63,857 nt of DNA, filler included, from Reticulomyxa filosa (GCA_000512085.1; 17 parts of 17 records of this genome joined end to end with filler, not necessarily neighbours in it); one strand, 5' to 3'; shown: positions 1 to 51,951, counted from the first letter of the whole stretch. Notes: a model not told the origin generated them from the letters alone. A program made the numbers and translations.

Positions 1-674
1 CAACATATATTTTTTATTTTTATTTTTATTTTATATATTCGGCACATCGAGTTCTCGAGGTCCGAATCTTGTTTTGTTGTGTGTTAATGAAAAGTTTTAG
101 GATTGCAGCGATGAAATAAAACGACGATGGCCATAATCAAATCTTTGACGGGGACCAGTAATTATTTGAGATCTTGGAGAAGCCAGAAATGGACTTTGAG
201 TTGGAAAAATGTTGAATATCGAAAACACGTCATTGCAGACCAAGTGGATATCCAAGAGTTTTCGAATGGCTTGTGTGAAAGAATGTGATTGATTTCAAAT
301 TTATTTCTATTGTGTGCCAACATTGAAACTATTTTTGTTGTGTTGTCAAGATTATTTAAAATTATAATGAAAAATACAAATATTTTCTAAGCTAATAAAT
401 CAGTAAAATGTTTTTTTTTTTATAGAAAAATCTCCAGTATTCAGGACTGTTCTATTATATGAAACAATCTTTAACGACATAAAATACTTTTGAAAAAATA
501 CTAATAGTGATTGAATGTTGATAATCCCTTTTGTTTTTTTTTTAAAAAAGCAGTTTATGCAATTGCAAAAAAACATAAATATGACCACTAAAAACACTAA
601 ATCATTCAAATATAAAGTTAGACAAAATAAACATCAATTCAAATATTAATGAATATTAAAAAAAAAACTTGAAT

Positions 675-3008: not shown

Positions 3009-4132
3009 TATATTTTGTTAATTTTTTTATAAATACCTCTCCTTGTTCTGGGCACTCAACAGCAAGTTTAAAACAAGGACCGTTGTGCTGCAAAGCAATG
3101 ATAAAACAATAAATAACTTAATTTATTTGGCATAATAAAAGGCTGTATACTGCTGATATTATGCACTGTAAAAGTCTTTGTTCATTAAAAAATGTGAGCA
3201 AATAAAGAAAAATAAGAAATAGGATGATCGAGAAAAATAGAATTTTGGCAACAACTGGGTGTCTTTTAAAAATGTAAACACACCAAAACTAACCGTGTTT
3301 TGGTTTTTATACGTGTTTAGGAAAAAAACCTTTTTTGTCAAACTTGTGAAAACAGTGTAGCTAAATGGACGCAATAAAATCAGGTGATAAAAAACAAAAC
3401 ACAGTAGAGGATATGATAATTCATGAAAATATGCGCAAAAAATACATGTACACAATATAGTGCCCGACTTGTTCCGTCACGAACTGCTGAAAAAGCACGG
3501 TTAAGCATAAACAAAGCACACAGTTGAGTATATGGAACGAAGTTTAAAACAAAACAAAACAGTGATCAATGGATTGGAGAGTACAAAACATAACGGTGCA
3601 AAAGAAAGCGAAACGAATGGAGGGGGAGCAAATCATAAGTTTTACCCGCTGGGAACACCAGAGACTCGAATTTTGCAGGCTTTATATGTTGAGTTGGGAA
3701 GTTTGGAGTGAGGGAAAAAAAAGCGAACAAGGAAAAAAAACAAGGAGTGATTGATATTGGTTTGCGAAAATGTGAAAAAAAAAGAAGAACATAACTACTT
3801 TTTTTTTTTATATTTTTTATGTGTGAAAATCAACCTAGGAGGACGTAAATGCATATCGTAACAAACTGATATCCAGTCTCGACTTAGTGTCTCGTGAGTG
3901 GAGCCGACACATGCCAGTGGATGACACATCTTTAAAGCACGCCCACAAATGCGCGTTGAAAACAGTAAAAATGCATCAAGTTTCACCGGCCAATGTGGAT
4001 AACTTTTTGCTGGTTATTATAAAAGAATTTTAGATGAGGAGGGAGGAGAGGAGGCAAAATTTTTTGGACAAAATTCAAAATTATGATAATTTTTTTTTTT
4101 TTAATAAAAAAAAAAAAAAAAAAAAAAAAAAA

Positions 4133-4232
4133 NNNNNNNNNNNNNNNNNNNNNNNNNNNNNNNNNNNNNNNNNNNNTTAATTAATTAANNNNNNNNNNNN
4201 NNNNNNNNNNNNNNNNNNNNNNNNNNNNNNNN
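4133..4232. other. Artificial contig linker (44 N + TTAATTAATTAA + 44 N); first of 16 identical copies
   Basis: Identical 100-bp spacer with stops in all six frames at 4133-4232, 10061-10160, 16249-16348, 21146-21245, 22814-22913, 24038-24137, 26343-26442, 30132-30231, 35189-35288, 36636-36735, 38327-38426, 39822-39921, 41274-41373, 51852-51951, 53554-53653 and 55393-55492. Genes are cut mid-sequence at many of them. Confidence 0.97.
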
Positions 4233-4269
4233 CAAGTAACTCAAGGCTAACAAAAAAATCTCACTTCAA

Positions 4270-5438
4270 AATGATATTTCTATGGTATCTTTGGTGGTAT
4301 TTGCCATTGGAATTAACATGGGCCCTATATGTGTACAACCCAAATAACAGCAGTTATGTGTATGACAGCGGTGAATTGTATGCAACAGATTACTGTGTTT
4401 CCGAACAGACCAATCATAATCTGAGTATAGTGACATATCAATGTGTAAATTCAACACATCTGCGCAAGCATCATTGGTATGGGAATGCTACTGATTGTAA
4501 CATGAAAAGTTCCTCTTTGGACTACTATTCCCATATAGCATATCCAAATTTTAGTTTCAGCTGTCTCGGATACCAATACGTTGAAATAGCGTGGATTAAC
4601 TATACATACAATTATGTGTGGGGCTCTTATACGTGTGCATATGGAGAAAACTTTAAAGTAAACAATAGCAACATCACGACAAAAAAGAGAGTATATATTT
4701 TTTGTTATTTTGATCATTTCTGATCCATCGAATATCAACTAATAAAACAAAACAAAAAAAGGCAAGGACTGCAGTTGCCGATGTATGCGTACCAACAAAA
4801 TCGGGAAATGCGTTAGTGCACGTATATACCAAACAACAACTACACAGCAATAAATACACGCAAATATAATTAAAAAAAAAAAAAATAGATATTACAAATG
4901 GTCTTGTAATGCGTATTATCTTTTTTACACAGAGTATTATGATCAATATTGCCAGAATGTCTTATACAGTGTAGCCACGTTAGGCGAGTGCAATATCACC
5001 TTGCATTGTGGTTATATAGATCAAGATATATATTCCTGTGATTGCACAGAATACTCTTCCAGTACTACTAGTATCATTATTATTGGGGTTATTGGAGGTG
5101 TTGTGTTTATATTAGTTTCATTTGCTTTGTGTCGTTATTGCAAAAGATATTTAGACGACTATTATCACCGTTACTACATTCAGTTTTGTTTTGTTTTTTT
5201 TTTTTTGTTTCATTTATTGGAGAAGGATTTTTTTTATAATGGTATAACGATATACGTAATCTTAATAAAAACAAACAAATGTAAGTCCAACTTCTGTAAT
5301 GATCGCCGATCAAAAGAACCCATTAATCGCAACCAAAATTGCTCGAAGCGTGGACATCAATTGAACGTTAGTTCTTACCTTTTACCTTCAATCCTATCAA
5401 TGCTAATTGCGCTAGTGATCTCCCATGGAGCTTTTTGA
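4270..5438 (+). CDS. Hypothetical Cys/Tyr-rich secreted or single-pass membrane glycoprotein (multi-exon)
   Basis: Hydrophobic N-terminus, Cys-rich segment with several NxS/T sites, later TM helix (IIIIGVIGGVVFILVSFALC) followed by basic residues. Exon structure is approximate. Confidence 0.45.
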
Positions 5439-5822
5439 CAGTCTGTGATTGTTTTATATACTTTTTTTTGTTTTGTTTTATTTTTTACTGTAGGATGCAA
5501 ACTGTAAATTAAATCATAAGTATCTTCAATATGTTACACTTATCCGTTTTTCCAAAATTTTAGACTTTTTTTCTTATATCCTTTCGTAACTGATCTGACT
5601 CAAAAAAACTCACTCTGAAAGCAGCTAAAAATATTATTGCAGAGAATTTACTATTATAGTTTTTTACTATTTATTGTACCCAAATTAATGAAAACATCTT
5701 TTTTTGCATTGTTTCAATTTTCACACAATTGTGCTTTGTCTCCTTGGATAAGGGTATGTACGTATTGATTTTATTTCGGCTGAATTTTTTTTAAAAAAAT
5801 TAGGGGAAAAAGAAATACTGCA

Positions 5823-7342
5823 ATGCCGTCGCTTCCGATTAATCTTTCTCTGGAGAATAAGTCACTTCATTCCCAAGACCCACAAAGTTGTAATTGCAAC
5901 TTTCATGCTTTCTTGGGGAACGCTCAGACAGCTGGAACGTCACGAATAGAGAATTGGTTGAATTTTGCAGAAATTTTGGGATTATTATTATTTTTCTCTT
6001 TTTTTGTACTTGGTCCTCCAATTATATTGTGGGACGTCGCCTTGATCAACCAAAGTAGAATATATCAACATGCAAAATTAGAGTATTTGGACAACGTGGT
6101 AATAAGTGCATTCTATGGTGTGGTTTGTTATGTACTATTAAAATGTATACTAATTGAAATGTCGACACATCAATTACAAACGTCTAACTCAAAACAAAAG
6201 CTATTGCGGTTGTTGGTTGTCATATCATCACTTCTCATAATCGGAATGGCAGAAGTGGATGAGTACATGCAGTATGGATATTATTCACACTATAGGGGTT
6301 TTTTATTTCAATGTTTAATAACGCTGTTGTTATATGGAATCGTTGAGCACAGCTCAAAGCATCGAAAGCAGAATCAGCATATGCTCCGATGGAATGATGT
6401 ACGCCTTTCTTGGAAGAATATTGAAGGTATATCCAATCAACGCACTTCAAAATTTTATTTGCTGCTGTGTGGCTTGTTTTGGATTGGTATTTTTGGTATT
6501 ACCTGTTTTGGAGTGACTTATTTTTTGGGTAACTTTCTTCTCTTTTTTTCAATCATATCCACTGAAAAATGGGTACTCAAAAAAACTGCACGACAAGTGG
6601 ATGTCATTCGGTTGGAATATTGCGCTAGCCTTAAAGGACCTTCTTTTGAAATTGTGACCGAGTTTGTCATATCAATCGTGTATGGAAGTGCTTCTGTGTC
6701 ATTATTCCTGTTTTGTGGAGAAATTTGTTTCATCATCTTCAAGACTATGCATGTAATATCCGAATTGTTTGAGACTGGGTAAAACTAATACAATAACTAT
6801 AATAGCAATAAACAAAAAAGATAATTTTTCGTGAACATGTTTTTTTCTATATTTTAAAAAAACAACAAAGATTTCGCTCTTCACACGTATATTTTATGGG
6901 CGCAAAACAATTTGAAGAAACTGCGTTTTGCAAAATGTTGAGTTCATTTGAAATTATTCAAGACAGAGATACATCATACGAGGAATGGAAAATGCGCTAT
7001 TGTGTGGACATTACGTTACATTTTATTGCATATATCATGTGCGATATTGGGAGCATTGCTATTTTAAATATGTATTACTCGCCCTTTGAGTTTCCCACTA
7101 GCATAAACCAGTTATCCGAATTGGTCATTATAAATGTGTTGATTGACTGTTTTATTTTTGTCGCCCTCTATCTTTGGTTTTGGTGTGGCTATTCCGTTGA
7201 CTTACTTCAAGTATCATCTGTTCTTTTTGTTTCACCGGACCGAAGTAAATTTCATTGGCAATTTTTGTGGACACAAGCCTTTTTGTTTGTTGGATTTGCG
7301 TACTGGATTTTTTTGAAAATCCTAAAAAAAACTTTTTATTGA
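5823..7342 (+). CDS. Hypothetical multi-pass membrane protein (at least 2 exons)
   Basis: ORFs of 319 aa and 148 aa with many hydrophobic helices, separated by an AT-rich intron-like stretch. Confidence 0.55.
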
Positions 7343-7952
7343 ATAAACAATCAGATCAAGGTGAAACAAAGTGATAATATTTTCGTGTATATGAGAAAGA
7401 GTTTGTAATATTTTGTAAAGGAACAAATTTTAAGATTGCGTTCAAATTTAAAAATTTGTTTTTTATAGAGAAAATCAGTTATCTTTTGATCCATAACATT
7501 TTCTATTCTACAGTAGAGTGCAAAAGAAAATTGACCTAATATTGATTTTTGAAAATTTGTGGGGGAAATTTGACAATCGTGCCTATTGCAACAATGAAAT
7601 TTGCTAACTTTTTTTAAACATTTTCATTATTTTTGTTATTATAACCATTTTCAAGAATAAAAAATATAAACAATAATTTTAATAAAAGCTGCAAATGCAA
7701 AAAAAGCTAAAAAAAAATAACGAAAGCAGCAAACAACAAAAATAGCAAAAATTCGAAAACTTAAAAGACGAAAATTTAGTTTTAAATTTTTCAAACAATT
7801 GTGAAAGAATCAAATCTATATTATAAAATAGTATATAATTTTTTTTAATATGAAAAAAATTTGTGTTTCTTCATGTAGAAAATCGATTATCTATAATGTG
7901 CCGTTTATGTCAACTTTATGTCTTTTAAATTTCAAGAATATTTTTACAATTA

Positions 7953-10060
7953 TTAAACAATACTTAAAACAAGCTTTACTAAATGTTCAATATTCTGACC
8001 TAAGTCAAGTTTGGTGATATTACATCCAATCACTACAATTAATTTGTTACAATCATATTGTGCTTTTCTACGGATGACAGTGTTGCAATCACTTCCAGCC
8101 ACGGTATTCTTGATATTTTGAATTGTTTTCTGGGGTATCTCCAAACGACACAATAACCGACTTGGGAGGGAAAGTAAATTCTGCTGTTGAGTAATTGTCA
8201 TAAAATATGCCAAAGTTTCAACAGTTGAATATTGTTGCATTGAATCTGCAGACGATATTGTCAAAACATTGCTTGCATCTTTAACCTCCATGTGATCAGC
8301 TTCTTTTGTAATAAAGTTTTGCATTGGCAACATTGAGTCTACCCTTTCACAATGTACTCCATGCATATTAAAAAATACATTGTTTAATGTTGCAACAACA
8401 GCATTATAATAATCGCATAGTATTTCATTTTTTTCAATTGTTTTTAACTCTTGTTTTTTCTCGTCACTGACAACATTCAGTGAAGAAACGTTATCCTCAT
8501 TTTTTTTTTCGTCATTGTTCACAGAGTCATTTGTCGATTCATTAACATCACTCCATAACACAGCATTTCTCGGCAATGTGGTATGTTCAATTTGCATTTC
8601 TTTTATTACTTTTTCTTCCAAAGGAATTTGGTTAGATTCAACTTTTTTCTCTTCTGTTTCGTCAATTAACTCGTTTGTTTGAAGGGACTCTATCTTCCAA
8701 TTTTTGCAAAATTCTCTGATTAAATTTTCAATATCAATAATCTCCTGGCATTTCCAAATATCCTCTTTTTTTGCACTTTTCATCTTTGCATTTATATTTG
8801 CCGTGTCCGATGCAATAACTAATGAAGACAAAACTGAAAGATTTTCCAAAGGATTTTCTCTCGACTTATGAACAGACAAATTTTCATTCTCTCTAGAAGC
8901 ATCTAATTGATCCAAGGTGCTCTCTGTCGGTGCAAATAAAGCATTCAATGCAAGATCTTCGTCGCTAGAATCAACTCCCAACCGGTCTCTTATCTTTTTT
9001 ATGGCTGCAGATGAGCCCATTAAATATAATGATTTTGCTGCCTCCATGTAAATGTATCTTTCTTCATCATTTAACACAACAGCAATTAGTGCATCCAATA
9101 CCTTTTCAGTTGCTGCAGCAGGTCCCATTAGGCTTAAAGCTTTAATCGCATTCCAACGAACACCTTCATTTTTGTCCTTCAAAGTGATTGTTAATTGATG
9201 TAATACATTTTCCAATGCGGCAGCTTGACCTATCAATCCCAATTTCTGTGCAGCGTCTCTGCGAACAGTCCAATTATCACTTTTCAAGTCTATTATCAAT
9301 CGATTTGTCACATTTTCCATGGCTGATGCTCCCATCAAACCCAATGACTTGGATGCCCTCTTAGCAACATTTGAATCTGTATCATGCAAAGCAACAACTA
9401 ATCGATGTAACACTTTTTCTGTTGCCGCCGCTGGACCAAATAAGCCAAGAGTGTTTGCTGTTTCCAAGCGAATGTCTACATCTGTATCCTTTAAAGTTTC
9501 GGCCAATTGATATAAAATTGCGTGTGTGGCTGCAGCTGACCCGAATGAGCCAAGAGCTCTTATCACTTCCAATCGAACATCTTTGTTCATATCCTTCAAA
9601 GCAACAGTCAATTCATCCAACACACGTTCGATAGCTGCTGCTGCTGCTGCTGATCCAATCCTTTGCAATTTTTTTGCCGCTTTTTTACGTATTTTCGAAT
9701 TTGCATCTCTCAAAGCGGCTGCCAATATAATCGGTTTTAATGAACTTGATATCTTTGCTATTTCCACGCGGGTATCCCAATCGCAATCCTTTAAAGATAG
9801 AATCAACTGATCTACAATGTCCTTTGTATGTGATTCGGGCCCCAAATAACTTACTGCATGTGCTGCTTTCACACGAATTACAGAACTGTCATGTTTCAAA
9901 GCGATTTTCAATTGGTTGAGTATGCATTGATTTGCATCATCATCTTCTCCGGAGCTATTAATCTCTGTCAGATATTGCACAATAATTGGTGGGTCTTCAT
10001 TAAGGAAGATATCCTCAACACTTTTTGCAAACTTGTCTAAAAATGTGAATATCTTATCAC
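7953..10060 (-). CDS. HEAT (PBS-lyase-type) repeat protein, 5'-truncated at linker
   Basis: Tandem ~35-aa repeats of the type LxxALKDxxxxVRxxAAxxLGxxGxAAAxExVLxxL, intronless. The reading frame stays open up to the linker. Confidence 0.85.
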
Positions 10061-41207: not shown

Positions 41208-42279
41208 AATTATTTATATGTCAGGGTCCTTTTTTTTTTTTTTTTTTTTTTTTTTTTGGGTTTTTTTTTTTTTNNNNNNNNNNNNNNNNNNNNNNNNNNN
41301 NNNNNNNNNNNNNNNNNTTAATTAATTAANNNNNNNNNNNNNNNNNNNNNNNNNNNNNNNNNNNNNNNNNNNNATTCCGGTGAAATAACTTTGATTTTTG
41401 ACAAAGTTAGACTGCGATCAGTATTTTTGCAATAAAAAATGTACTATAATGAAGCTTTTTGAGAAAATGACTTCTCATATGGCGCTATTGAGAATCCCAA
41501 GGAGTTACAAATAATTTTGAACAGCCTATCTATTGCTCTTTCCAAAACACCTTAAAAAAAAGTTGGATTGTAAATAATGAAACAGATATATTTTTTAGTC
41601 TGAAAAGCGTAGATTATTTTAGAATCAATTTCGGTCTTTCTACGACGATTTTACATCAATGAGAACAGCGAATAAGTTTAAAAAGTTGAAGTTTTTTCAG
41701 TTTTTCAAAGTGACATATGATTGAGTTTTTTCGCAAATAGAAAGGAGTTATTGAGTCGCGATTGCGTGGACCTGGTAGTACTCTCCGAGTTCTACAAAAG
41801 TGTGTTTTTGGTGTATCTTTTGAAATCTCAACTGTATCGAGTAAAGCTTTATTCTACGTATTTCCGGTAACAATCCACAGTTGCGTTAAAATGTTGCTCT
41901 AGTTAGAATGAAAAAAACAAATGATTTGCTACAAACTTTGAAAATAACATTAAATTCTGCAAAAAAAAATTTTTGATAACAAAAAATTGAGTTTTCTCAA
42001 AAACTATGCAACATAGAAAGCTAATTTTTTTAAAATATACTAATTGTAAAAAAAATTTTGCAAATTTCATGATTACGACAAAGTCACATTATCAACTTCT
42101 TCTCGGAAATTTTTAAAAATCAATAAAATATTTAAATTTTAAACAATTAGTAAATATATAATAAAAACTAAATTCAAAATTATATTTAAAAATTACAATA
42201 TTATTATATATATTTTTTAATAAATATAATGCAATTTTAGGTGTCAACTTTAATTTACATTTTACTGGATTTTCTGTCT

Positions 42280-42960
42280 TGATTTTACATTCAATAAACA
42301 TATTGTTTTATCATATTATAATGACGCAATAGTTTGACTAATATGTAGAATATTTCAATTCATTTACATTATCTTGATGGTCTTCAAATTTTTTCAGGCT
42401 CAATTTTATATCTAATATGATGATAGTCTTGTCATATGGACAAGATAAAGCAAAGTTGCAATTTGTGGAAAATTGTATTTGCATTAAATCTGAATATTGT
42501 TTAATTTTTTACCCATTAAATCACATATGATAATTGCTTTGTTAGCTGATGATGCACAATCATTTACTATCTATCAAAAAGTGTACTATAAATATATTAA
42601 TATCAATCATTTTTTTGATTTCTTTTCCAGAATTTATTTTCCATAATCACATGGCTTGTGAAATGAACACAATATAATATATTTACTATTAAATCGAAAT
42701 ACCATTATAACTTCTTAAATTCATTTCTTGATTTTATATTAGCAAGCGAATAGTATTGTCATCTGAGCACGAAGCAATGAGCTTTCTATTGGCGAAAATT
42801 CCGCAATATTGACACAATCAAAATGTTTATTTAAAATTTGTGTTTATTCTCCTGGTACAACATTCTATATTTGAATAGTACTATCATTTGCTAAAAATCT
42901 TATACTATTTATCCACATGTCGTGTCCTTAAAAACCTTCCACAATTTGACTATGTTGGAT
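42280..42960 (-). pseudogene. Decayed WD40-repeat pseudogene
   Basis: Minus-strand remnants GHDMWINSIRF, HFDCVNIAEFSP, LIASCSDDNTIRL, SCPYDKTIIILD, HQDNVNELKYS and YDKTICLLN, broken by stops and frameshifts. Confidence 0.7.
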
Positions 42961-43623
42961 ATAATAAAATTTTATAATTACAGTAGCTACTTTTACTAGT
43001 GTAAAAAAACGTTGAACAGCAATACTTAACTTATTTCAGAACCATTCAAAGCCACACTAGTTTTAAACTTAAAACTCGAATCCAATTTGAATAATTATCT
43101 TATTTTGTCGCAATTGATAAACCCAAGTATTAACAATAATTTAAATAAAATGCACTTTTGAATTTTACTCAATTCGACCACGCCACTTAGGATGTATTGC
43201 TTAAATATGAAATACATATAAAAAGATGAAAAGAGGAAATTACATCTTATTTGTTGTTTATTTTATTGAGGTAATGAATAAACAGAAATAAGCAAAATGT
43301 AGCAAGAGAGAATATTCGTAAGAAGTGAACAAGATGGAGAAAGCGCAGCTCTATTTCTTACGCCATTGTGTCTGCAGGATAGAAAAGCAGTCTGCAAAGT
43401 TTTATGAGAGTACAGTTTTATTTTAATTTGAAAATTGTTTAATTCATTTCAATTAAAACATATGACTTTTTTTTTTTTGGTAATATCACTTTTACTTAAT
43501 GATTGAAGTTTTTTTTAATTACAAAAAGATAAATAAAGACAGAGAAGAAATAAAGCAATTTTTTGGAGAAATCACATACCAAAAAAAACCCTCCCAAGGA
43601 TACAACAACAACAAGAAAAAGTG

Positions 43624-45272
43624 TTACCAATGAGAGTCAAACTCAACAAGAACAAAGGGTATCATCTCACTCCAATCGGGTCTGGTATTGGTGAGAGGAT
43701 TGATATAATTGCGATGAAAAGGGAACCACTTTCTGTCCATAGCGAGTTCTTGTTGAGTGATGCAAAAGTGTGGAATGCCATCGTCAAAGGAGTCGCAAAG
43801 GACATGACGCATGAAAGAGACAACGAACAATTTGTCCAAGATATCGGGATTGGTGATGACACTGGAGATATTGGGCGGGAAGTTCATGGCCGACTTGGCA
43901 TAAACATCGCCCATGTAGCACAAGTGATTGGCACGATAATACCTTTGTTCGCCGACGTTCCACCCAGCTTCTTGAAAATAGGGGACAATATTTTCCCACA
44001 TGTTAGTGCCGACAAGACTATGAGCGACGCCAATCATGAGGAAATACGACGAGTTGGTCATATAAAACACTTCAGGCGCAGTGACAAAGTACTGTGAGTC
44101 GCGATTGTCCGCCAAGCAACGCGTGTCATACTCCAAGCAGCCAAAGCCATAATCGAGCGTGCCATGATAGAACGGCGCACTCACAATCATCGTGCGATAC
44201 TCGAAGCCAAAGCCAGTGCGTACATAATTCACCACGCTGGATACAAGCGTTTGAAACGCGCTTTCGAGCTGTCCGCCGTACATCGTCTGCTCGCTTATCC
44301 CGGTCGTCGTGTTGCGAATCATCGCGTCGCATGCCTGTCTGGGCTTCTTGTTATCTCGTAAGCTTGCCGGCGGTGTGATCTTGTAAATGGTATAATTGCG
44401 CGACATGTAATCCATCCAATCGTCGTGGGTATATCCTTGTGTCGTTGCTACCATTCCTCCTCGATACATTAATGCAAAGTTATCCAATGTCTCTCCTGAC
44501 AATAACTGCTCTTCCCAATTGCTTGTTTGGAAGTATACGTGTCGTGTCTCTCCTTTGTATGTGTATTCGTATGGAATGCAGTCCAGGTTTGTCGTTGCCC
44601 CCAAACCACCTTTTCGAATGCGTTTTTTATGTCAGTATACGTCTCTATGTCACCCGTCGATACGTATGTGGCAATGTTGTCGAAGGTGCGATTGCCGTAC
44701 GGCTGCGTGGATATATTCATCACGCGCTGGTTTAACATGTCCCCCAACGAAGCGTAAGGGTCGATCACTAATTTGTTCTCGTCATTATTGCTGCTGCTGC
44801 TGTTGCCTGCGCGGAAACGCAAGTTCACATACGACCGATAACTTATGTACTCCGTTGGTGGGGTGCAGTCGTGCCATAAGATCGCCGAACTTGCGTAGAG
44901 CATATAATAATCGGTGTCGTATTGGTGGGGACGGAGGTGGCTTTTCGCACCTTTCAACGATATTATCAAGTCTTCTTCTTCTTCTTCTCCTCTTCTGGAA
45001 TGCTCTTGTGATAAATCCGATTCTCCTATCTCACGTTGAAATGAAAACAAACTGTAACCTAACATCGGATTCGCACCGTAACTTGACACGTTGTAACGCC
45101 AATATGCCCAACCCCTCTCCACTTCATATCCCAACGATTCTAGCTCGGATAACACTTGCTCTAACGCTGTATCATTCCTTTGGCACTCTAATACACTATT
45201 CACCAAGGTTATGCACAATCCGCATAGCAATAGTCCCCTTGTCAAATGGAAGGGTTTCCAAATTGCCATCAT
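43624..45272 (-). CDS. Intronless secreted protein of unknown function (~550 aa; one homopolymer frameshift at ~44611-44614)
   Basis: Signal peptide MMAIWKPFHLTRGLLLCGLCITLVNS. Motifs YGANP, CTPP..YISYRSY, YASLGDMLN, NLDCIP, CLADNRDSQY. ORFs 44469-45554 and 43624-44604 join if one base is added to the A4 run (EKGGLGATTN). Confidence 0.75.
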
Positions 45273-45882
45273 TGTGGGTTCAGCCCCCTCTTTTAAAAAT
45301 AAACCTAAACATCTCACTTTTTTTACTAGATTGCAGTGGATTTGTGCAAGTGTTTTGGGGCTATGCTTTACATTCACTTCCACTTTGTTAAAATACTTGT
45401 TTGCATTTGTTTCACTTTTTAAATGATTTTTAGATGTAACCATTTCACTTTCGGTTCTCTTTTTTTTTTTTGGAAAATGTTTGTGAACTAAAACTTTTTT
45501 CAAATTTTGAAGTCGATCTTTTTTGTTCTCTTCAATCCTGACGTTTTCGTTCAAGAGACAATCAGGTCAGAAACAATCATAAAATACATTTTTTTCGTGA
45601 TCCTCAAAGTAGGTTGAATGAAAACTAGCGTAACCTGTAGACGGCCCACAAAAGTACTCAAACAAAAGAGAAGGAGAGTACAGGTCCGCACGTTTGCGCA
45701 GACGTAAACTATGCCAAGACAGCCAAATATCAATGGTTTTAGACCCAACGATTGTAGCTCACTTGTAGAAACACAAAGCGATTCATTTATTAAAGTTTGG
45801 ATAAAATTACTGTCTTTTTGCAAAAAAAAAAAAAGGTTTTAATCAGTTGGTTGAAATATTATGTGACTAGACCCAAGAAATA

Positions 45883-48800
45883 ATGCGTGTGTTTACACAT
45901 GGTAATATAAATGAGTTCTACCATGTTTGTAAAGAACGCACCAAACTCATAGGAGGTATGCAGAATGGAGTAGAAGTTGGAAAGTATGAAGCGGAAATGA
46001 AAGCATTGATAAGATTGTACGGTGATGTAATTAAAGAAGAAGAATTGAAAAAACTACTTGAACAAAGCAATGGCAATGTATCAATAGTGATTGATCAGAT
46101 TACAGCTACACTGCTGAACCAGAATGTCATTCATATTTTCCACACATACAAAAAAAAAAAAAAAAAAAAATTTACATATATTTTTGCATAATAAAACAAA
46201 ACGATAAATAGACTGTTGTTCAAGATTCAATTGAAGAGCATAAAATGGAACAAGTTAAGACTAACGAAGTAGGACAAGAGCCAGAACAATTGAAAAAAGA
46301 AGAAGAAAAGGCAGAAATTGGAGAAACTAAACCAGGAATTAATTTGCAAGGTTATTGCATAAACATGGATTGTTTGGCTGCAAAGGCTCATTTACCAGTA
46401 TGGGTGAATCTTGGATTTGCTGATATTTCATTTCATTCAGATAAAACGTCCTATCACTGTCCAGACTGCGGACAATTGACTGTCACATCAGTTATAAAGA
46501 CAATGGTTTTTAATTCAGAACACTCAATCAGTGCAAGTGATAGCTCTATTCCTGTGAAGCATAATCACTATCAATGCTTTTATTCAATCAAATCAGGATT
46601 ATCTTATGAAGTGAAAGCAAAGAAAATAAGACAACATGCAATAAGTCTGGACGATTTAATTACTCGAAGTGAAAATGCGATGATAAGTAATGAAATACTC
46701 AATTTAGTAGCTGAATTACAAAAATATCTGATAACAGTTGTAAAGCCACCCAAAGTAAAAGACAGTGTAAGACTATTAGAAAAGATTAAATGTGATTACA
46801 ATGGAGATTATAATCAAGTATTTGATGTTGGAAGATTTACAATCTTATGTGACAATGCAACCAAATTGCAAACAGCAGTAGCGGTAATGAAAAAGGCAGA
46901 GAAATTTAATTTGATTGTATCTGAGGATAAAGATTTCTTTGAAAGACAATCGAAGACACATCACAGATTCCACAATATTAAATTATATGTCCCAAAACAT
47001 GATGTATATGTGGAGATGCAAGCAACATTAAAAAACTTTACAACATTGGAAGGATATACTGTAATAGAGAATCCAAAATTAAGTCATCTGTTTTATGAGC
47101 ATATCCGGGCATGGAAACCAAAGAATACAGAAGAAGAAGATTTAAAGCAAGCAAGTGATGAGGCTTTGACAAAAATTAACGATGTTATTTGTGAATGGAC
47201 TGATGACAAAGGAATACAAAAATTAGCAAATCGTTATAAATCTCACCTGGATATCGGAATATTGAAACCTTCACAATTGTTTAAAAGTGAATCAGATATT
47301 AATAATAATGTGTCATTGAAAATGGCACAATTTGTACATGAACAATTATGTAAATTCACTCCAGAGAAAATGAAAGGGAAAGCTATTTATGTAATCTTAT
47401 ATGAATATTATAAAAAGTTTATTATTGGAAATAAAAATCCAGCAAGTTGTTCTGATTTTGCATTATTATTGCAAGAATCAAGGAAACAAGAAATGGAAGA
47501 AGATATTGCAATATCACAAGCCCTTGAAATGTATATTTCATTACAAGCAAATAGTTATCCACATATAGACGGTGATGACAATGAAAAAAATGATACATTT
47601 GATTGTCATCAACATGTGATTGAATTTTTGGAAAAAGAGACAGTAGAAGAAAAGAAACGTGAGAAACAATATCAACAACAAAGAAAAGTAATTATAATTC
47701 AAGGAAAATCAGGGTCAGGAAAAAGTTTATTCTGCCGTCATTTAGAAACAATATTATGGAGTAATTATGCTTTTAATTCAAAACAGCCTATTCCTGTTTA
47801 TATTTCTTTTCCAAAGGTTTATAACAAAAATAATGAAAAAGATATTATTTTACAAGCTTTACAAGGTAAACATATCAGCAAAGAAATCATGGACGCAATT
47901 CGTGAAAAAGTACCATTTGTATTCATTATGGATGGTTTTGATGAAATATTCGATAAATATAATAAAAATGAAAACAATGATAAGTATTTTTATGATCGTT
48001 TTAATTTAAATCAATGGAATGCAAAAGTGATTGTCACTTGCAGAAGTAAAGTATTAAGTGATGAAGATATTAATATCGCTTTAGTTAATGTAAATCAAAC
48101 TCAAAATATAACAACATCAATGATGTATTTATGGCCATTCACAAAACAACAAATTCATAATTATATTGAAAAATTTGCAGTCATGAAATCAAAAAATAAA
48201 AAAAAAGTGATGATAGCAACGATTGGACACCAAAGAAATATGAAGAAACACTGAATAATTATCCAAATCTACAAAAAATGGTAGAAGAGCCTTTTCTCCT
48301 TCAGCTCATTTTAACAGTATTGCCATCACTGGTGAAACAATATGGTGCAGGAAGCAGAATTTCAAAAGCAAAAGTATATGAAGTATTCAATAATCAATGG
48401 ATAGATATCCACAGTGAAAATATTATTTCTAAATTAACAGAATTAAGAATTCAAATGAATATTAACAAAATCAAATATACATTGAAACAATATTGCCTCG
48501 ATTTAGGCTTTGATATGTTCCATCAAGGAAACCAAGTTGCAGTTGAACCAGAATCTCAACATGAAAACAATGACATTAACACCTGGAGTAAATTAGATCC
48601 AGAAATGGAAAGTGATAATAAAAATGGTGTTGTCGATGAAAAAATAGAAATAAAAACGATCAATGATACTTCAAATTCAAAAACACAAGATGTTTGGGAA
48701 AAATATTTCAATGGCGACAGTATTGCAAAATATGTATTGAGAAGAGTTGGCGATAACAAATATCAATTTTTACATAAGTCATGCCAAGAATATTATGCTG

Positions 48801-51415
48801 CACAAAAAATTATATTTGATATTATTTCGTGGAAACCAAATATTGTTACGATTGATAATCAACAATTTCAGCAACAATTTGAAACACATGTCCGACAATT
48901 GTCTATCAATCGCAAATTATTAAATGAAGAATTGGGAATTATTCAATTTATTGCAGAGAGAATTCATGATATAAGTCCAGTATATATTAATTTAAAATCA
49001 AGATTATTTCGAATTGTTGAATCATCAAAAAATAATGAAAATATTAGCATTGCGGCTGCAAATGCAATTACTATACTTAATTCAGCAAATGTAAATATGC
49101 ATTATAGAGATTTGAGCAATGTCAAAATTCCTTATGCAATACTGGATCATGCATTTCTTGAAGGAACCAATTTTACTAATGCTAATTTAAATAATGCTAG
49201 TTTTTATCAAACTTGTTTAAACAAAACTAATTTCACAAATGGATCGATGAATGATGTCTACTTTGGAGAATATGCATATTTGGAAGGACATTCAAATGGG
49301 GTAAACGGAATTAAATTTTCTCCAGATGGATTAAGAATCGTATCATGGTCAAATGATGAAACTTTACGAATATGGGATACAATATCAAGACAACAGCTTT
49401 ATGTATTGACAGGACATTCAAATTGGATAAGTGCAGCACAATTTTCATCCGATGGTTCTAAGATTGTATCATGTGCATGGGATGATCCAATTCGAATATG
49501 GGATGTACTATCAGGTAAACAGATTCAATTATTGGAAGGACATTCGGATAATATATGTATAGCACAATTTTCACCAGATGGTTCAAAGGTTGTATCATGT
49601 TCAGAGGATGAGACAATTCAAATATGGGATACATCATCTGGAAAACAAATTCACTTGATTGAAAAAAATGCAAATTGGGTGGAATTTTTTCCAGATGGCT
49701 CCAAAATTGCAGCGTGTTTAGAGAACGGTGCCATTCAAATATGTGATGTATCATCTGGTAAACGACTCCAAATATTGAAGGGACATCTAGGTCTTATAAC
49801 TGGAATACGATTTACTCTCGATGGATCAAAAATTATATCTCGCTCAGAGGACAATACTATCCGAATATGGGATGTATTATCAGGTAAACAAATTTTTTCA
49901 TTAGAAGGACATACTAAGGATATAAATGGAATACAATTATCATCAGACGGTTTAAAAATTTTATCATGTTCAAGTGATGGCACCATTCGAATGTGGGATT
50001 TATTTTCTGGACGACAACTTCAAGTATTTGAATATTCACAAGGAATAACAGAAGCAAGATTTTCACCTGACAGCTCTAGAATTGTATCTAGTTCTAGTGA
50101 TAAAACAATTCGAATATGGGATGTATCATCTGAAAAGCTACTTCAAGTATTAGAAGGACATTCAGATGAAATAAATGGAGTAGAATTTTTCCCAAAAGAC
50201 AATAAAATCTTATCATGTTCAAAAGACTGTACAATTCGAATATGGGATATAGCTTTAGAAAGAAAAATCCAGTTAACTGAAGAATATTTGGCTAACCTAA
50301 TGGATGTAAGATTATCACATGATGGTTCCAAAGTAATATCATTTTCCTCAGATAAGACAATTCGATTTTGGGATATACAATCAGGAAAACTAATTCAATC
50401 ATTTGAAATAAATGTAAGTGGTGAATATGGCATTCAATTTTCTTTAGATACTTCCAAACTTGTATCATATGAACGCAATAACGAAATTAAAATATGGGAT
50501 GTGTCATCTGGAAAACAGCTTCAAGTATTAGAAGGACATTCAATCGATGCACAGGGAGTACAATTTTCATCTGATAATTCTAAAATTTTATGTTATTTTC
50601 CAAACAAGACAATTGGAATATGGAATGTGATATCTGGCAAACGACTTCAAGTACTAGAAGAACGTTTAAACTATGTAAGTAAAATAAATTTTTCACCAGA
50701 TGGTTCTAAAGTTGTATTTTATTCTGAGGATAGAACACTTCTATTATGGGATTTGTTATCTGAAAAACAATTCAAATTAGCAAAATATGAACATTATACT
50801 TACGACATTAAATTTTCATCAGATGGATCGAAATTTGCATTTGATATATCGGGTACGCTTCATATCTGGGATATATTATCTAAAAAGCAGCTTTTATTAT
50901 TAAAAATGGATTCTCCTACAAAGGATTTGCAATTCTCTCCGAGTGGTACCAAAATATTATTACGTTCATATGATAAAAAAATAAGACTATTGGATGTGTT
51001 ATCTGGGAGCAAAATTCATATATTTGATGGGTTTTCAAATGTATTGGGAATGCAATTTTTGCCTGATGGTTCAAAATTTATCTCTTATTTAGAAGATAAC
51101 ACAATTCGAATATGGGATGTATCTTCAGGAAAACAAATCCAATTGTTAGAAGGACATACAGGAGGTATTGCTGGCATACAATTATCACCAGATGGATCGA
51201 AATTGGTGTCATATGCAAAAGATAAAACAATCCGATTATGGGGTAGTGACAGTGGTAAAATAATTGATGTGAATGAGAGTAGTAGAGTGGAATGTATTTG
51301 GAAAGTGGGCGTTCAAAGTTTTGGCTTATGTATGAAAGACAGTATTTGGAAAAATACAAATGGTTTAACTCAACAACAGAAATTGCTTGTAGAACAACGT
51401 GGTGGAAAATTTTAA
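45883..51415 (+). CDS. NLR-like STAND protein: helical N-terminus + Cys4 Zn-ribbon-like + RelA/SpoT-like nucleotidyltransferase + NACHT + pentapeptide repeats + 16 WD40 repeats
   Basis: Phase-0 GT-AG intron at 46126-46211. RSH-like motifs at 46755-47108. Walker A GKSGSGKS at 47703-47726, Walker B FIMDGFDE, sensor-1 VIVTCR, winged-helix [12 protein letters not shown], pentapeptides at ~49100-49265, WD40s at ~49275-51240. A one-base frameshift in the A9 run (48198-48206) links the 669-aa and 1045-aa ORFs. Confidence 0.9.
49275..51243 (+). repeat. Tandem array of 16 WD40 units (~126 bp each) with nucleotide-level similarity
   Basis: Recurrent TTAGAAGGACATTCA, TTTTCACCAGATGGTTC and ACAATTCGAATATGGGATGTATCATCTGG words at ~126-bp spacing. 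Confidence 0.9.
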
Positions 51416-51951
51416 TTATTAACATGAAAATAAAACTCGTTTTTTAGTTTTGTTTGTTAGATATGGTAAGATCAAAAGCATAAAGATTTAAAAATTAAAT
51501 TATATTTGCAGACTGGTTTACTTGTAATATATTAAAATAATAATCAAAAATAAAAGATTTTAATTGTCTATTTCTACAAATGTCGAAACAAATCAAAGTA
51601 CATCAAATAAATTATTTTATGTATGGCATCAATAGAAGCAAAAAAAAAAAAATATATGTACAACTGAGTAATAAAAAAAAATTATTCTGGCAAAAAGCGG
51701 ATTCCTTTTTGATTTATGATATCATGATTGCTGTTTTAAAATTAAAAATTAATTATATGTTCGTTTTATATGTTTTGCTTAAGATAAATGTTTATTTTGG
51801 CAATTACAAATTACAGTATGTTGCAAAAAAAACTGAACACCTAAAATGCCANNNNNNNNNNNNNNNNNNNNNNNNNNNNNNNNNNNNNNNNNNNNTTAAT
51901 TAATTAANNNNNNNNNNNNNNNNNNNNNNNNNNNNNNNNNNNNNNNNNNNN

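Follow-up and report, generated by a model that had tools for sequence, protein, structure and literature searches.

A predicted RelA/SpoT-homologue synthetase domain in a multicopy NLR-type gene of the foraminifer Reticulomyxa filosa

Three collinear ORFs occupy positions 45883 to 51415 (plus strand) of the window, the 63,857-nucleotide stretch of Reticulomyxa filosa DNA that was analyzed here and to whose full length all coordinates refer. The locus raises two questions: whether these ORFs belong to one NLR-type receptor gene, and whether the segment that precedes the NACHT is a RelA/SpoT-homologue (RSH) synthetase domain. R. filosa, the source organism of this NLR-type locus, belongs to the Foraminifera (Rhizaria), as a sequence-only reading had guessed in proposing a rhizarian-type protist.

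One gene across three ORFs

For this base composition, the mean random ORF is about 11 codons, and ORF2 and ORF3, with 669 and 1045 codons, are therefore not due to chance (Table 1). Alignment of paralogue proteins traced a single gene across ORF1 to ORF3 if an 86-nt intron was removed and a one-base frame break was allowed. That one intron and one homopolymer indel would reunite the gene had been proposed from the sequence alone, and the RSH motifs, NACHT, pentapeptide repeats, and 16 WD40 units were all found where that reading had placed them. On this alignment evidence, 45883 to 51415 is confirmed as a single NLR-type gene with a putative intron and an A9 frame break, and the domain order is CUE/UBA-like, Cys4 beta-domain, RSH synthetase-like, NACHT, pentapeptide repeats, and WD40 units.

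Table 1. Features of the R. filosa locus, in coordinates of the whole window
Feature	Position	Strand	Basis or remark
ORF1	45883-46191	+	collinear with ORF2 and ORF3
ORF2	46245-48254	+	669 aa
ORF3	48278-51415	+	1045 aa
Exon 1, CUE/UBA-like small helical domain	45883-46125	+	weak Pfam/profile matches, paralogue homology
Putative intron, 86 nt, GT..AG	46126-46211	+	A21 run inside at 46150-46170
Exon 2 start, K/E-rich linker	46212-46316	+	in frame with exon 1, without stop
Cys4 all-beta domain	46317-46604	+	Cys codons 46356, 46371, 46458, 46467
RSH synthetase-like domain, Tas1-like	46605-47234	+	profile, structure model, motifs
Motif of 10 residues	46755	+	RSH-type motif
RSH-like key residues	Lys 46758, catalytic Asp 46824, Arg 46833	+
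DYNGD	46794	+	RSH-type motif
VFDVGRFTI	46818	+	RSH-type motif
KDFF	46929	+	RSH-type motif
THHRFHN	46956	+	RSH-type motif
VEMQATL	47010	+	RSH-type motif
RSH-like key residues	catalytic Glu 47013, Gln 47019, His 47085, Tyr 47094	+
HLFYEHIR	47085	+	RSH-type motif
Helical linker, RSH-like domain to NACHT	47235-47687	+	paralogue conservation
NACHT NTPase	47688-48197	+	PF05729 and Walker motifs
Walker A GKSGSGKS	47703-47726	+	NACHT motif
Walker B FIMDGFDE	47922-47945	+	NACHT motif
VTCR	48033-48044	+	NACHT motif
A9 homopolymer, frame break	48198-48206	+	frame switch in paralogue alignments
NOD module, C-terminal part (helical and winged-helix arm)	48207-49117	+	collinear with paralogues
FLHKSCQEY	48767	+	NOD C-terminal arm motif
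Pentapeptide repeats	49118-49264	+	PF00805
16 WD40 units	49286-51244	+	PF00400 and many propeller models
Short C-terminal tail and stop codon	51245-51415	+	ORF3 end

Paralogue homology in the ORF1 frame stops at 46125 and picks up by 46218 in the ORF2 frame. The putative intron has GT at 46126 and AG at 46210-46211, its removal preserves the frame, and introns of this genome average 87 bp (PMC13746701). The ATG of ORF2 (46245) lies inside the K/E-rich linker of exon 2, and an equivalent acidic/basic linker is present in paralogue P0032.

Past the A9 run, the NACHT arm continues in the other frame. Among the 27 paralogue models with the YIEKF motif, 20 pass the break point in a single frame, 5 end at the matching K/N-rich stretch, and 2 end just before it; model P0080 has the same shifted reading at the break. 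Since most paralogues are continuous at this site and the assembly is of low contiguity (N50 of 3.6 kb; PMC13746701), the simplest reading of the break is that one base of the homopolymer was miscalled in this highly fragmented draft. A somewhat unlikely alternative is that this copy is a recently disabled pseudogene with a real one-base break, other members being intact, in which case its product would be limited to CUE-Cys4-RSH-NACHT and truncated in the NOD arm. The break does stand in the sole sequence of the locus, and the five models that stop at the same K/N-rich stretch could mean repeated A-run slippage; however, the ORFs that flank the break are clean and far longer than random expectation, one homopolymer base in a low-contiguity draft suffices to explain it, and the frame is continuous in most of the paralogue models.

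The tripartite single-polypeptide layout holds in this copy only if the A9 break is an error. The uninterrupted ORF2 encodes both the RSH-like domain and the NACHT, which are thus joined without any splicing, and the whole architecture is present in the single paralogue proteins P0057 (1734 aa), P0056 (1368 aa), and P0021. Both the pairing of these two domains in one protein and the tripartite NLR layout had been claimed earlier, and ORF2 and these full-length models, respectively, bear the claims out.

Exon 1 matched Pfam CUE weakly (E = 0.012), as did its family profile the UBA-like region of USP25 (E = 0.18). At least 29 paralogue proteins have a homologue of exon 1 ahead of their Cys4 domain, paralogue P0087 is labelled "CUE domain-containing" in UniRef, and a counterpart in L002 lies upstream of the annotated start of P0057. 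In the Cys4 domain, the four Cys are invariant or nearly so across 30 family members (alignment A5), and the AlphaFold pLDDT was ∼94 to 95. This domain had no Pfam match and no PDB sequence match, and its structural matches were generic beta-sandwiches only, with Z below 6.

Downstream, the NACHT (PF05729; E = 1.1e-9, 38.8 bits) and the pentapeptide repeats (PF00805; E = 2.3e-7, 30.7 bits) scored above their thresholds of 26.7 and 20.2 bits, respectively. The helical linker ahead of the NACHT had no Pfam match, and the NOD C-terminal arm is collinear with paralogues P0021, P0057, and P0005. The WD40 region (PF00400; E = 1.3e-100) was also matched by many propeller models, and its 16 units (ORF3 aa 337-989) probably form two propellers. 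Tandem periodicity in this region is 126 nt, and the best unit identity is 73 to 75%.

The domain ahead of the NACHT

The assignment of this domain to the RelA/SpoT synthetases was examined by profile. This copy matched PF04607 weakly (E = 3.4e-4; 21.3 bits, below the gathering threshold of 27). Precomputed PF04607 matches are present on paralogues P0001, P0025, and P0028, and 8 of 10 distant relatives matched the family, two of them above threshold (P0098, 30 bits; P0099, 40.6 bits). When compared with the PDB, family profile A1 matched Tas1 (E = 2.9e-18) and RelP (E = 1.3e-8), followed by RelQ, Rel, and RelA, and for an R. filosa-only profile Tas1 (E = 1.3e-3) was the only meaningful match. 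Comparison by hhalign with the Pfam-positive group gave 99.7% (E = 9.5e-26). The closest sequence relatives are toxin-type, namely, Tas1 and proteins with eCIS_core and MuF/SPP1 gp7-type N-termini.

AlphaFold models of the domain had pLDDT values of 85.3 and 87.1, and the best 50 Foldseek matches were all RSH synthetases (Tas1, E = 1.5e-8). VIA-align placed Tas1 first (Z = 13.7; rmsd of 3.2 Å over 172 residues), followed by RelP (13.1), RelQ (12.9), CapRel (10.9 over 179 residues), and FaRel (5.7). RSH synthetases scored Z of 8.5 to 13.7 versus at most 8.4 for generic nucleotidyltransferases (TUTases and CD-NTases), so the predicted structure separates the RSH fold from generic Pol-beta nucleotidyltransferases. 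Taken together, the profiles and structure models indicate that the domain truly belongs to the RSH synthetase fold, with Tas1 as its nearest solved relative.

The Lys/Arg (Syn1), Asp-x-x-Arg (Syn2), Glu-x-Gln (Syn4), and His-x-x-Tyr (Syn5) motifs are present, and K52, D74, and E137 are invariant in alignment A1. Among paralogues, the Asp is kept in 51 of 53 copies, the Glu in 46 of 48, the Lys in 51 of 53, and the Arg (R77) in 49 of 53; for the whole set of Asp, Glu, Lys, Arg, Gln, His, and Tyr motif residues the figure is ∼90 to 96% of the 53 copies, and among 19 distant relatives few if any lack them. The sequence-only reading thus held on each of these points: the profile matches to Tas1, RelP, and RelQ supported its RelA/SpoT assignment, the structural comparison that it had suggested was headed exclusively by RSH synthetases, and the Asp (46824) and Glu (47013) that it had singled out are conserved.

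The canonical acceptor-site Gly-Tyr of Syn3 is absent, and this copy has His-His instead. Across the 53 paralogues, the Gly position is His in 51, and at the Tyr position 41 copies have His and 8 have Tyr; in distant relatives the loop is Gly-Tyr. Because of this replacement, the substrate could differ or activity could be altered. The noncanonical loop bears on substrate choice and leaves fold membership untouched.

Selection and a proposed mechanism

The locus is one of at least 50 STAND/NLR-type genes of an R. filosa-specific family, a single-architecture expansion that contributed 53 copies to the residue survey. Within the gene, purifying selection is strongest on the RSH-like domain (dN/dS of 0.09 to 0.11). 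Values were 0.16 to 0.38 for the RSH-NACHT helical linker and 0.08 to 0.32 for the NOD C-terminal arm. For the WD40 region dN/dS was 0.79 to 0.86, with dS below that of the rest of the gene, and these values may be inflated by misregistered repeats.

We consider it fairly probable that the R. filosa RSH-NACHT-WD40 family is a ligand-triggered pyrophosphokinase switch for defense or allorecognition; the enzyme product, the trigger, activation by oligomerization, and the immune or allorecognition role are what we infer. By analogy with other NACHT-WD40 proteins, the protein would act as a ligand-triggered switch in which a ligand that signals non-self or danger docks on the WD40 propellers and the NACHT then exchanges nucleotide and oligomerizes. 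Clustering or release of the N-terminal RSH domains would activate them as ATP-dependent pyrophosphokinases. Rapid ATP consumption would be the likeliest outcome, along with accumulation of nucleotides of the (p)ppApp or (p)ppGpp type, and the affected cytoplasm would be arrested or killed. Such a switch would fit R. filosa, a fusing multinucleate amoeba that feeds on bacteria, as a means of defense or allorecognition.

An unlikely alternative to a direct toxin is a signaling enzyme, whose nucleotide second messenger would activate separate effectors or disturb engulfed or intracellular bacteria. The bacterial diet of R. filosa is consistent with this, as is the structural near-equality of the signaling enzymes RelP and RelQ with Tas1. 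Manipulation of prokaryotic signaling has also been suggested for fungal RelA_SpoT NLRs by Dyrka et al. (PMC4986451). On the other hand, the closest sequence relatives are of the toxin type, and no candidate messenger receptor or effector was recognized beside the gene.

More doubtful is a domain that pyrophosphorylates the tRNA 3'-CCA and blocks translation, like CapRel, FaRel2, and PhRel2, without making free alarmones. CapRel is a clear structural match, and the Tyr-to-His change at the acceptor site of most copies makes a non-guanine acceptor possible; however, Tas1, RelP, and RelQ surpass CapRel and FaRel in both sequence and structure. A catalytically dead adaptor or oligomerization module in a family of nonimmune role would accommodate the sub-threshold Pfam score and the noncanonical acceptor loop of this copy, but it is improbable given the retention of the catalytic residues in paralogues and distant relatives, a set that an adaptor does not need, and the lowest dN/dS of the gene.

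Returning to the pyrophosphokinase switch, we suggest only tentatively its most specific form, in which a foraminifer independently built an NLR of more than 50 copies whose effector is a Tas1-like pyrophosphokinase acquired from bacterial polymorphic toxins; upon non-self recognition, it would convert ATP to (p)ppApp-type nucleotides, and part of the syncytium would thereby be killed or quarantined. If so, alarmone-type nucleotide chemistry would be an effector of eukaryotic cell-autonomous immunity or allorecognition, and the R. filosa NLR and the fungal RelA_SpoT NLRs would have arisen by convergence.

Comparison with known systems

RelA_SpoT-NACHT-WD40 NOD-like receptors were described in fungi by Dyrka et al. 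in 2014, who interpreted fungal NLR domain order as an effector-NOD-sensor arrangement (PMC4986451). This supports the earlier remark that RelA_SpoT domains occur on some fungal NLRs, and it lowers the novelty of the present architecture. Compared by domain order, the fungal and R. filosa proteins share an N-terminal RelA_SpoT-type domain, a NACHT, and WD40s, in what is presumably a common effector-switch-sensor logic, with a constrained N-terminus and variable repeats. No fungal sequence turned up in the sequence searches. They differ in lineage, in the CUE-like and Cys4 beta-domains that R. filosa adds before the RSH domain, in its pentapeptide repeats before the WD40s, and in its expansion of a single architecture. 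To our knowledge, the fungal proteins are biochemically uncharacterized.

In Pseudomonas aeruginosa, Tas1/Apk1 (PDB 6ox6) is a type VI secretion toxin that synthesizes (p)ppApp. Sequence profile, Foldseek, and VIA-align all rank it first among solved relatives, and it shares all four catalytic motifs, although identity is only ∼19 to 20% and its acceptor loop is Gly-Tyr instead of His-His. Tas1 is delivered by secretion and paired with an immunity protein, whereas the R. filosa domain is built into a NACHT-WD40 protein; Pfam detected no secretion-associated domain in the gene, and the neighboring ORFs belong to no recognizable family. Neither a cognate immunity protein or partner hydrolase nor a ligand or downstream partner was recognized. 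Within the Tas1/Apk1-like group, the product is (p)ppApp, (p)ppGpp, or both (PMC12691689), and homology thus does not fix the R. filosa product.

RelP, RelQ, Rel, RelA, and SpoT share the fold and the catalytic motifs, but RelP, RelQ, and the long RSH enzymes make (p)ppGpp in bacterial or plastid stress signaling, and the R. filosa protein is without hydrolase, TGS, and ribosome-binding domains. The toxSAS, including CapRel, are fused or bipartite toxin-antitoxin systems with anti-phage function. Beyond its structural match, CapRel has an RSH toxin domain restrained in the same polypeptide and freed by a foreign-protein sensor, as we propose for R. filosa; unlike it, CapRel relies on a small sensor/antitoxin domain at its C-terminus and has tRNA as its target, whereas control in R. 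filosa would lie in a NACHT-WD40 STAND switch.

Like the fungal NACHT-WD40 allorecognition proteins of the HET-E, HET-D, and NWD type, the R. filosa family is multigenic, combines a NACHT with a WD40 sensor region that evolves differently from the remaining gene, and resides in a fusing syncytium. Those proteins carry a HET domain as N-terminal effector, and their very high internal repeat identity is missing from the R. filosa units. Thus, the RelA_SpoT-NACHT-WD40 kind of receptor is known already, described so far only among fungal immune-type receptors, and what R. filosa adds is a foraminiferal representative, the scale on which the family has expanded, a subtype that is Tas1-like, and additional domains at the N-terminus.

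Gene structure of the locus

The region has a G+C content of ~30%, and at this base composition a random ORF averages ~11 codons. Because the three plus-strand ORFs are far longer than this mean, they were judged to be coding. Searches were run on single ORFs or sub-ranges. All of the motifs quoted in the earlier sequence-only reading of this DNA were located at the positions assigned to them, and the pentapeptide repeats and 16 WD40 units that it described were recovered as well, so that the observation of the locus itself is confirmed. No Rfam family or tRNA was found in the piece searched (41374-51851).

Features of the locus and its upstream flank, with the basis of each call
Feature	Position	Strand	Basis
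Two overlapping ORFs, 326 and 361 aa	43624-45554	-	Different frames; G+C 42-52% versus ~30% around
ORF1, 102 aa	45883-46191	+	ORF call, collinear with ORF2 and ORF3
ORF2, 669 aa	46245-48254	+	ORF call
Cys4 domain	ORF2 aa 25-125	+	All-beta, four near-invariant Cys; modelled at pLDDT ~94-95
RelA/SpoT homologue (RSH) synthetase-like domain	46605-47234, ORF2 aa ~121-330	+	
NACHT	ORF2 aa 482-644	+	Pfam E 1.1e-9, above threshold
ORF3, 1045 aa	48278-51415	+	ORF call
Pentapeptide repeats	directly ahead of WD40s	+	PF00805 E 2.3e-7, above threshold
16 WD40 units	ORF3 aa 337-989	+	Strong WD40/propeller Pfam signal; 126-nt periodicity

The three ORFs had been proposed to form a single protein after one intron and one homopolymer indel. 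Paralogue alignments followed ORF1 to 46125 and picked up again by 46218 in the ORF2 frame; the putative intron begins with GT at 46126 and ends with AG at 46210-46211, and excision of these 86 nt preserves the reading frame. Introns of the R. filosa genome average 87 bp (PMC13746701). In at least 29 paralogue proteins, the Cys4 domain is preceded by ORF1-like sequence, and for the paralogue model P0057 a CUE-like exon was located ahead of the annotated start (1782-1903 of the paralogous locus L002). The frame switch between ORF2 and ORF3 was placed within an A9 run (48198-48206), past which a conserved NACHT arm carries on in the other frame. Among 27 paralogue models that hold the YIEKF motif, 20 run in one frame straight across the break point, 5 stop at or just past a K/N-rich stretch (including P0080, which has the same shifted reading as this locus), and 2 end no more than 2 residues from the motif. 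The whole architecture is present in single proteins in the paralogue models P0057 (1734 aa), P0056 (1368 aa), and P0021, and at this locus the RSH-like domain and the NACHT lie within one unbroken ORF. The comparison with paralogues thus leaves two readings of the frame break: a homopolymer miscall, in a draft assembly that is very fragmented (N50 of 3.6 kb; PMC13746701), or a recent lesion of this one copy. The collinear alignment and the frame-keeping GT..AG support the single-protein proposal, which holds for this copy if the first reading is right.

Two long A runs, A21 at 46150-46170 in the putative intron and A13 at 45822-45834 just upstream of the ORF1 ATG, are assembly-error-prone, and there may be further local miscalls at these sites. 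Public annotation also fragments the family: the paralogue at 3114-8933 of the second paralogous locus, L001, is annotated as two separate gene models (567 and 1239 aa). The minus-strand ORFs upstream may together represent one orphan gene, interrupted by a frame break or an intron; they gave no Pfam family, no homologue in a search of 5.8 billion proteins, and no atlas match, and a counterpart was not found next to the two paralogous loci.

The RSH-like domain

Searches with this copy alone gave weak signals. PF04607 (RelA_SpoT) matched the isolated segment at 21.3 bits versus a threshold of 27 (E 3.4e-4) and was absent from the Pfam matches of the whole of ORF2, and a single-sequence phmmer search of the PDB returned Tas1 only at E 0.23, alongside spurious Pin1 matches. 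When the 210-aa domain was searched exhaustively with HMMER, 63 cluster representatives were recovered at E ≤ 1e-3; about three-quarters of these (above ~39% identity) are members of the R. filosa family or environmental look-alikes, some of the closer of which come from soil or water metagenomes, and the remainder (26-35%) are distant relatives. PF04607 was matched by 8 of 10 distant relatives, 2 of them above threshold, and the N-termini of several are of bacterial toxin type (eCIS_core, or SPP1 gp7/MuF-type by protein name). A profile built from the family and the distant relatives matched Tas1 at 2.9e-18 and RelP at 1.3e-8, followed by RelQ, an exported alarmone synthetase, Rel, and RelA. 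With a profile of R. filosa sequences only, Tas1 was the sole meaningful match (E 1.3e-3), and hhalign paired this profile with the distant group at a probability of 99.7% (E 9.5e-26).

AlphaFold models of the domain reached pLDDT values of 85.3 and 87.1, with pTM values of 0.78 and 0.79, respectively. When the predicted structure was compared with the PDB by Foldseek, the top 50 matches were all RSH synthetases, with Tas1 first. VIA-align of the model against 48,161 representative chains likewise placed Tas1 at Z 13.7 (rmsd of 3.2 Å over 172 residues), RelP at 13.1, RelQ at 12.9, and CapRel at 10.9, with generic nucleotidyltransferases beginning at Z 8.4. RelA_SpoT clusters were also among the shape matches from the ESM Atlas. 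Unannotated atlas clusters from Nucleocytoviricota, tailed phages (fused to Peptidase_S78_2), and diatoms were matched at TM 0.66-0.70, and many viruses and other protists may carry Tas1-like domains.

Lys (46758), Asp (46824), and Glu (47013) were invariant in a 26-sequence alignment. Across 53 paralogue copies, Asp and Lys were each kept in 51 and Arg (46833) in 49, and Glu was kept in 46 of the 48 with a residue at that position; all four are retained in all or nearly all of 19 distant relatives. The dN/dS of the domain against two paralogues (0.09 to 0.11) was the lowest in the gene, with NACHT at 0.20 to 0.22. Five independent lines from sequence and modelling thus support, and in our view settle, the assignment of the segment as a RelA/SpoT-type synthetase. 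The sequence-only reading had made this call from motif order; the profile and structure matches, including those to Tas1, RelQ/RelP, and CapRel, and the retention of Asp and Glu among paralogues agree with it.

The acceptor site departs from the canonical RSH form. The usual Gly-Tyr is His-His in this copy, and distant relatives keep Gly-Tyr. His occupies the Gly position in 51 of 53 copies and the Tyr position in 41, with Tyr retained in 8. The Tas1/Apk1-like group includes makers of (p)ppApp, of (p)ppGpp, and of both (PMC12691689). Since product specificity varies in this group, homology cannot give the product for this domain.

The family and its other domains

The N-terminal 460 residues match 55 R. 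filosa proteins at 47-86% identity, and the NACHT part matches 41 proteins, all from R. filosa and largely of the same family. DNA similarity to the two paralogous loci ends at the gene borders, by which the family as part of a larger repeat or mobile unit was rejected: the expansion is that of a gene family. Some members vary in layout. P0001 (RFI_08856) has two tandem Cys4 and RSH-like modules ahead of a single NACHT, the module is partly repeated in P0023, and ~600 unrelated residues precede it in P0049 ("vcbs repeat-containing"). Five environmental metagenome proteins from outside the R. filosa assembly (P0079, P0058, P0061, P0065, and P0084) share 39-65% identity with the family; the module is probably shared by uncultured relatives among foraminifera or amoebae.

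Exon 1 encodes a small helical CUE/UBA-like module with weak matches, and one paralogue is named CUE domain-containing by UniRef. The Cys4 beta-domain gave no Pfam family and no PDB sequence match; its structural search returned generic beta-sandwiches only, and its atlas features matched only unnamed rotifer clusters. In the WD40 region (49286-51244), dN was the highest in the gene and dN/dS was ~0.8, a value that misregistered repeats may inflate, while dS against paralogues was 0.5 to 0.6, below that of the rest of the gene (0.8 to 1.7). The low dS and high dN in these alignments suggest that the units exchange repeats or evolve in concert, a pattern that fits the repeat homogenization and diversification reported for fungal NLR repeats.

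Proposed working and comparison with known systems

R. filosa is a bacterivorous, multinucleate, fusing amoeba. The family could plausibly serve in allorecognition or in defence. By analogy with STAND/NLR proteins, the WD40 propellers would sense a ligand, upon which the NACHT would switch and oligomerize; the N-terminal RSH domains would then, by analogy with RSH enzymes, turn into active pyrophosphokinases. We infer that the likeliest output would be ATP depletion with build-up of an alarmone-type nucleotide, leaving the affected cytoplasm arrested or dead, because the nearest relatives are toxin-type enzymes, Tas1 among them. The toxicity of Tas1 results from conversion of ATP to (p)ppApp. 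Less probably, the domain may have a second-messenger role or an anti-bacterial role, or may modify tRNA-CCA.

Receptors of the NLR type that carry enzymatic effectors recur across bacterial, fungal, plant, and animal immunity; to our knowledge, almost nothing is known of them in Rhizaria, and fungal RelA_SpoT-NACHT-WD40 proteins are still uncharacterized. The RSH-like domain is compact (~210 aa) and well modelled, and its activity is directly testable. If active, it would offer a first case in which to study alarmone-type pyrophosphokinase chemistry in a eukaryotic immune-type receptor and would aid in interpreting the fungal proteins.

A 2014 paper (PMC4986451) described RelA_SpoT-NACHT-WD40 NLRs in fungi, and they figure in later fungal surveys, in line with the remark in the sequence-only reading that some fungal NLRs carry RelA_SpoT. 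The same design occurs in R. filosa, a likeness of domain order, which shows that it is not confined to fungi. A full-text literature search found no paper pairing Reticulomyxa filosa with NACHT or Reticulomyxa with RelA_SpoT, and the genus is absent from the published survey of Tas1/Apk1 homologues, which was restricted to bacteria. Profile and model comparisons place the predicted effector with the toxin-type (Tas1-like) branch of the RSH enzymes, not with the housekeeping stringent-response enzymes. New here are the lineage, an expansion of this size and uniformity, the affinity of the putative effector to Tas1, and the addition of CUE-like, Cys4, and pentapeptide domains to the design.
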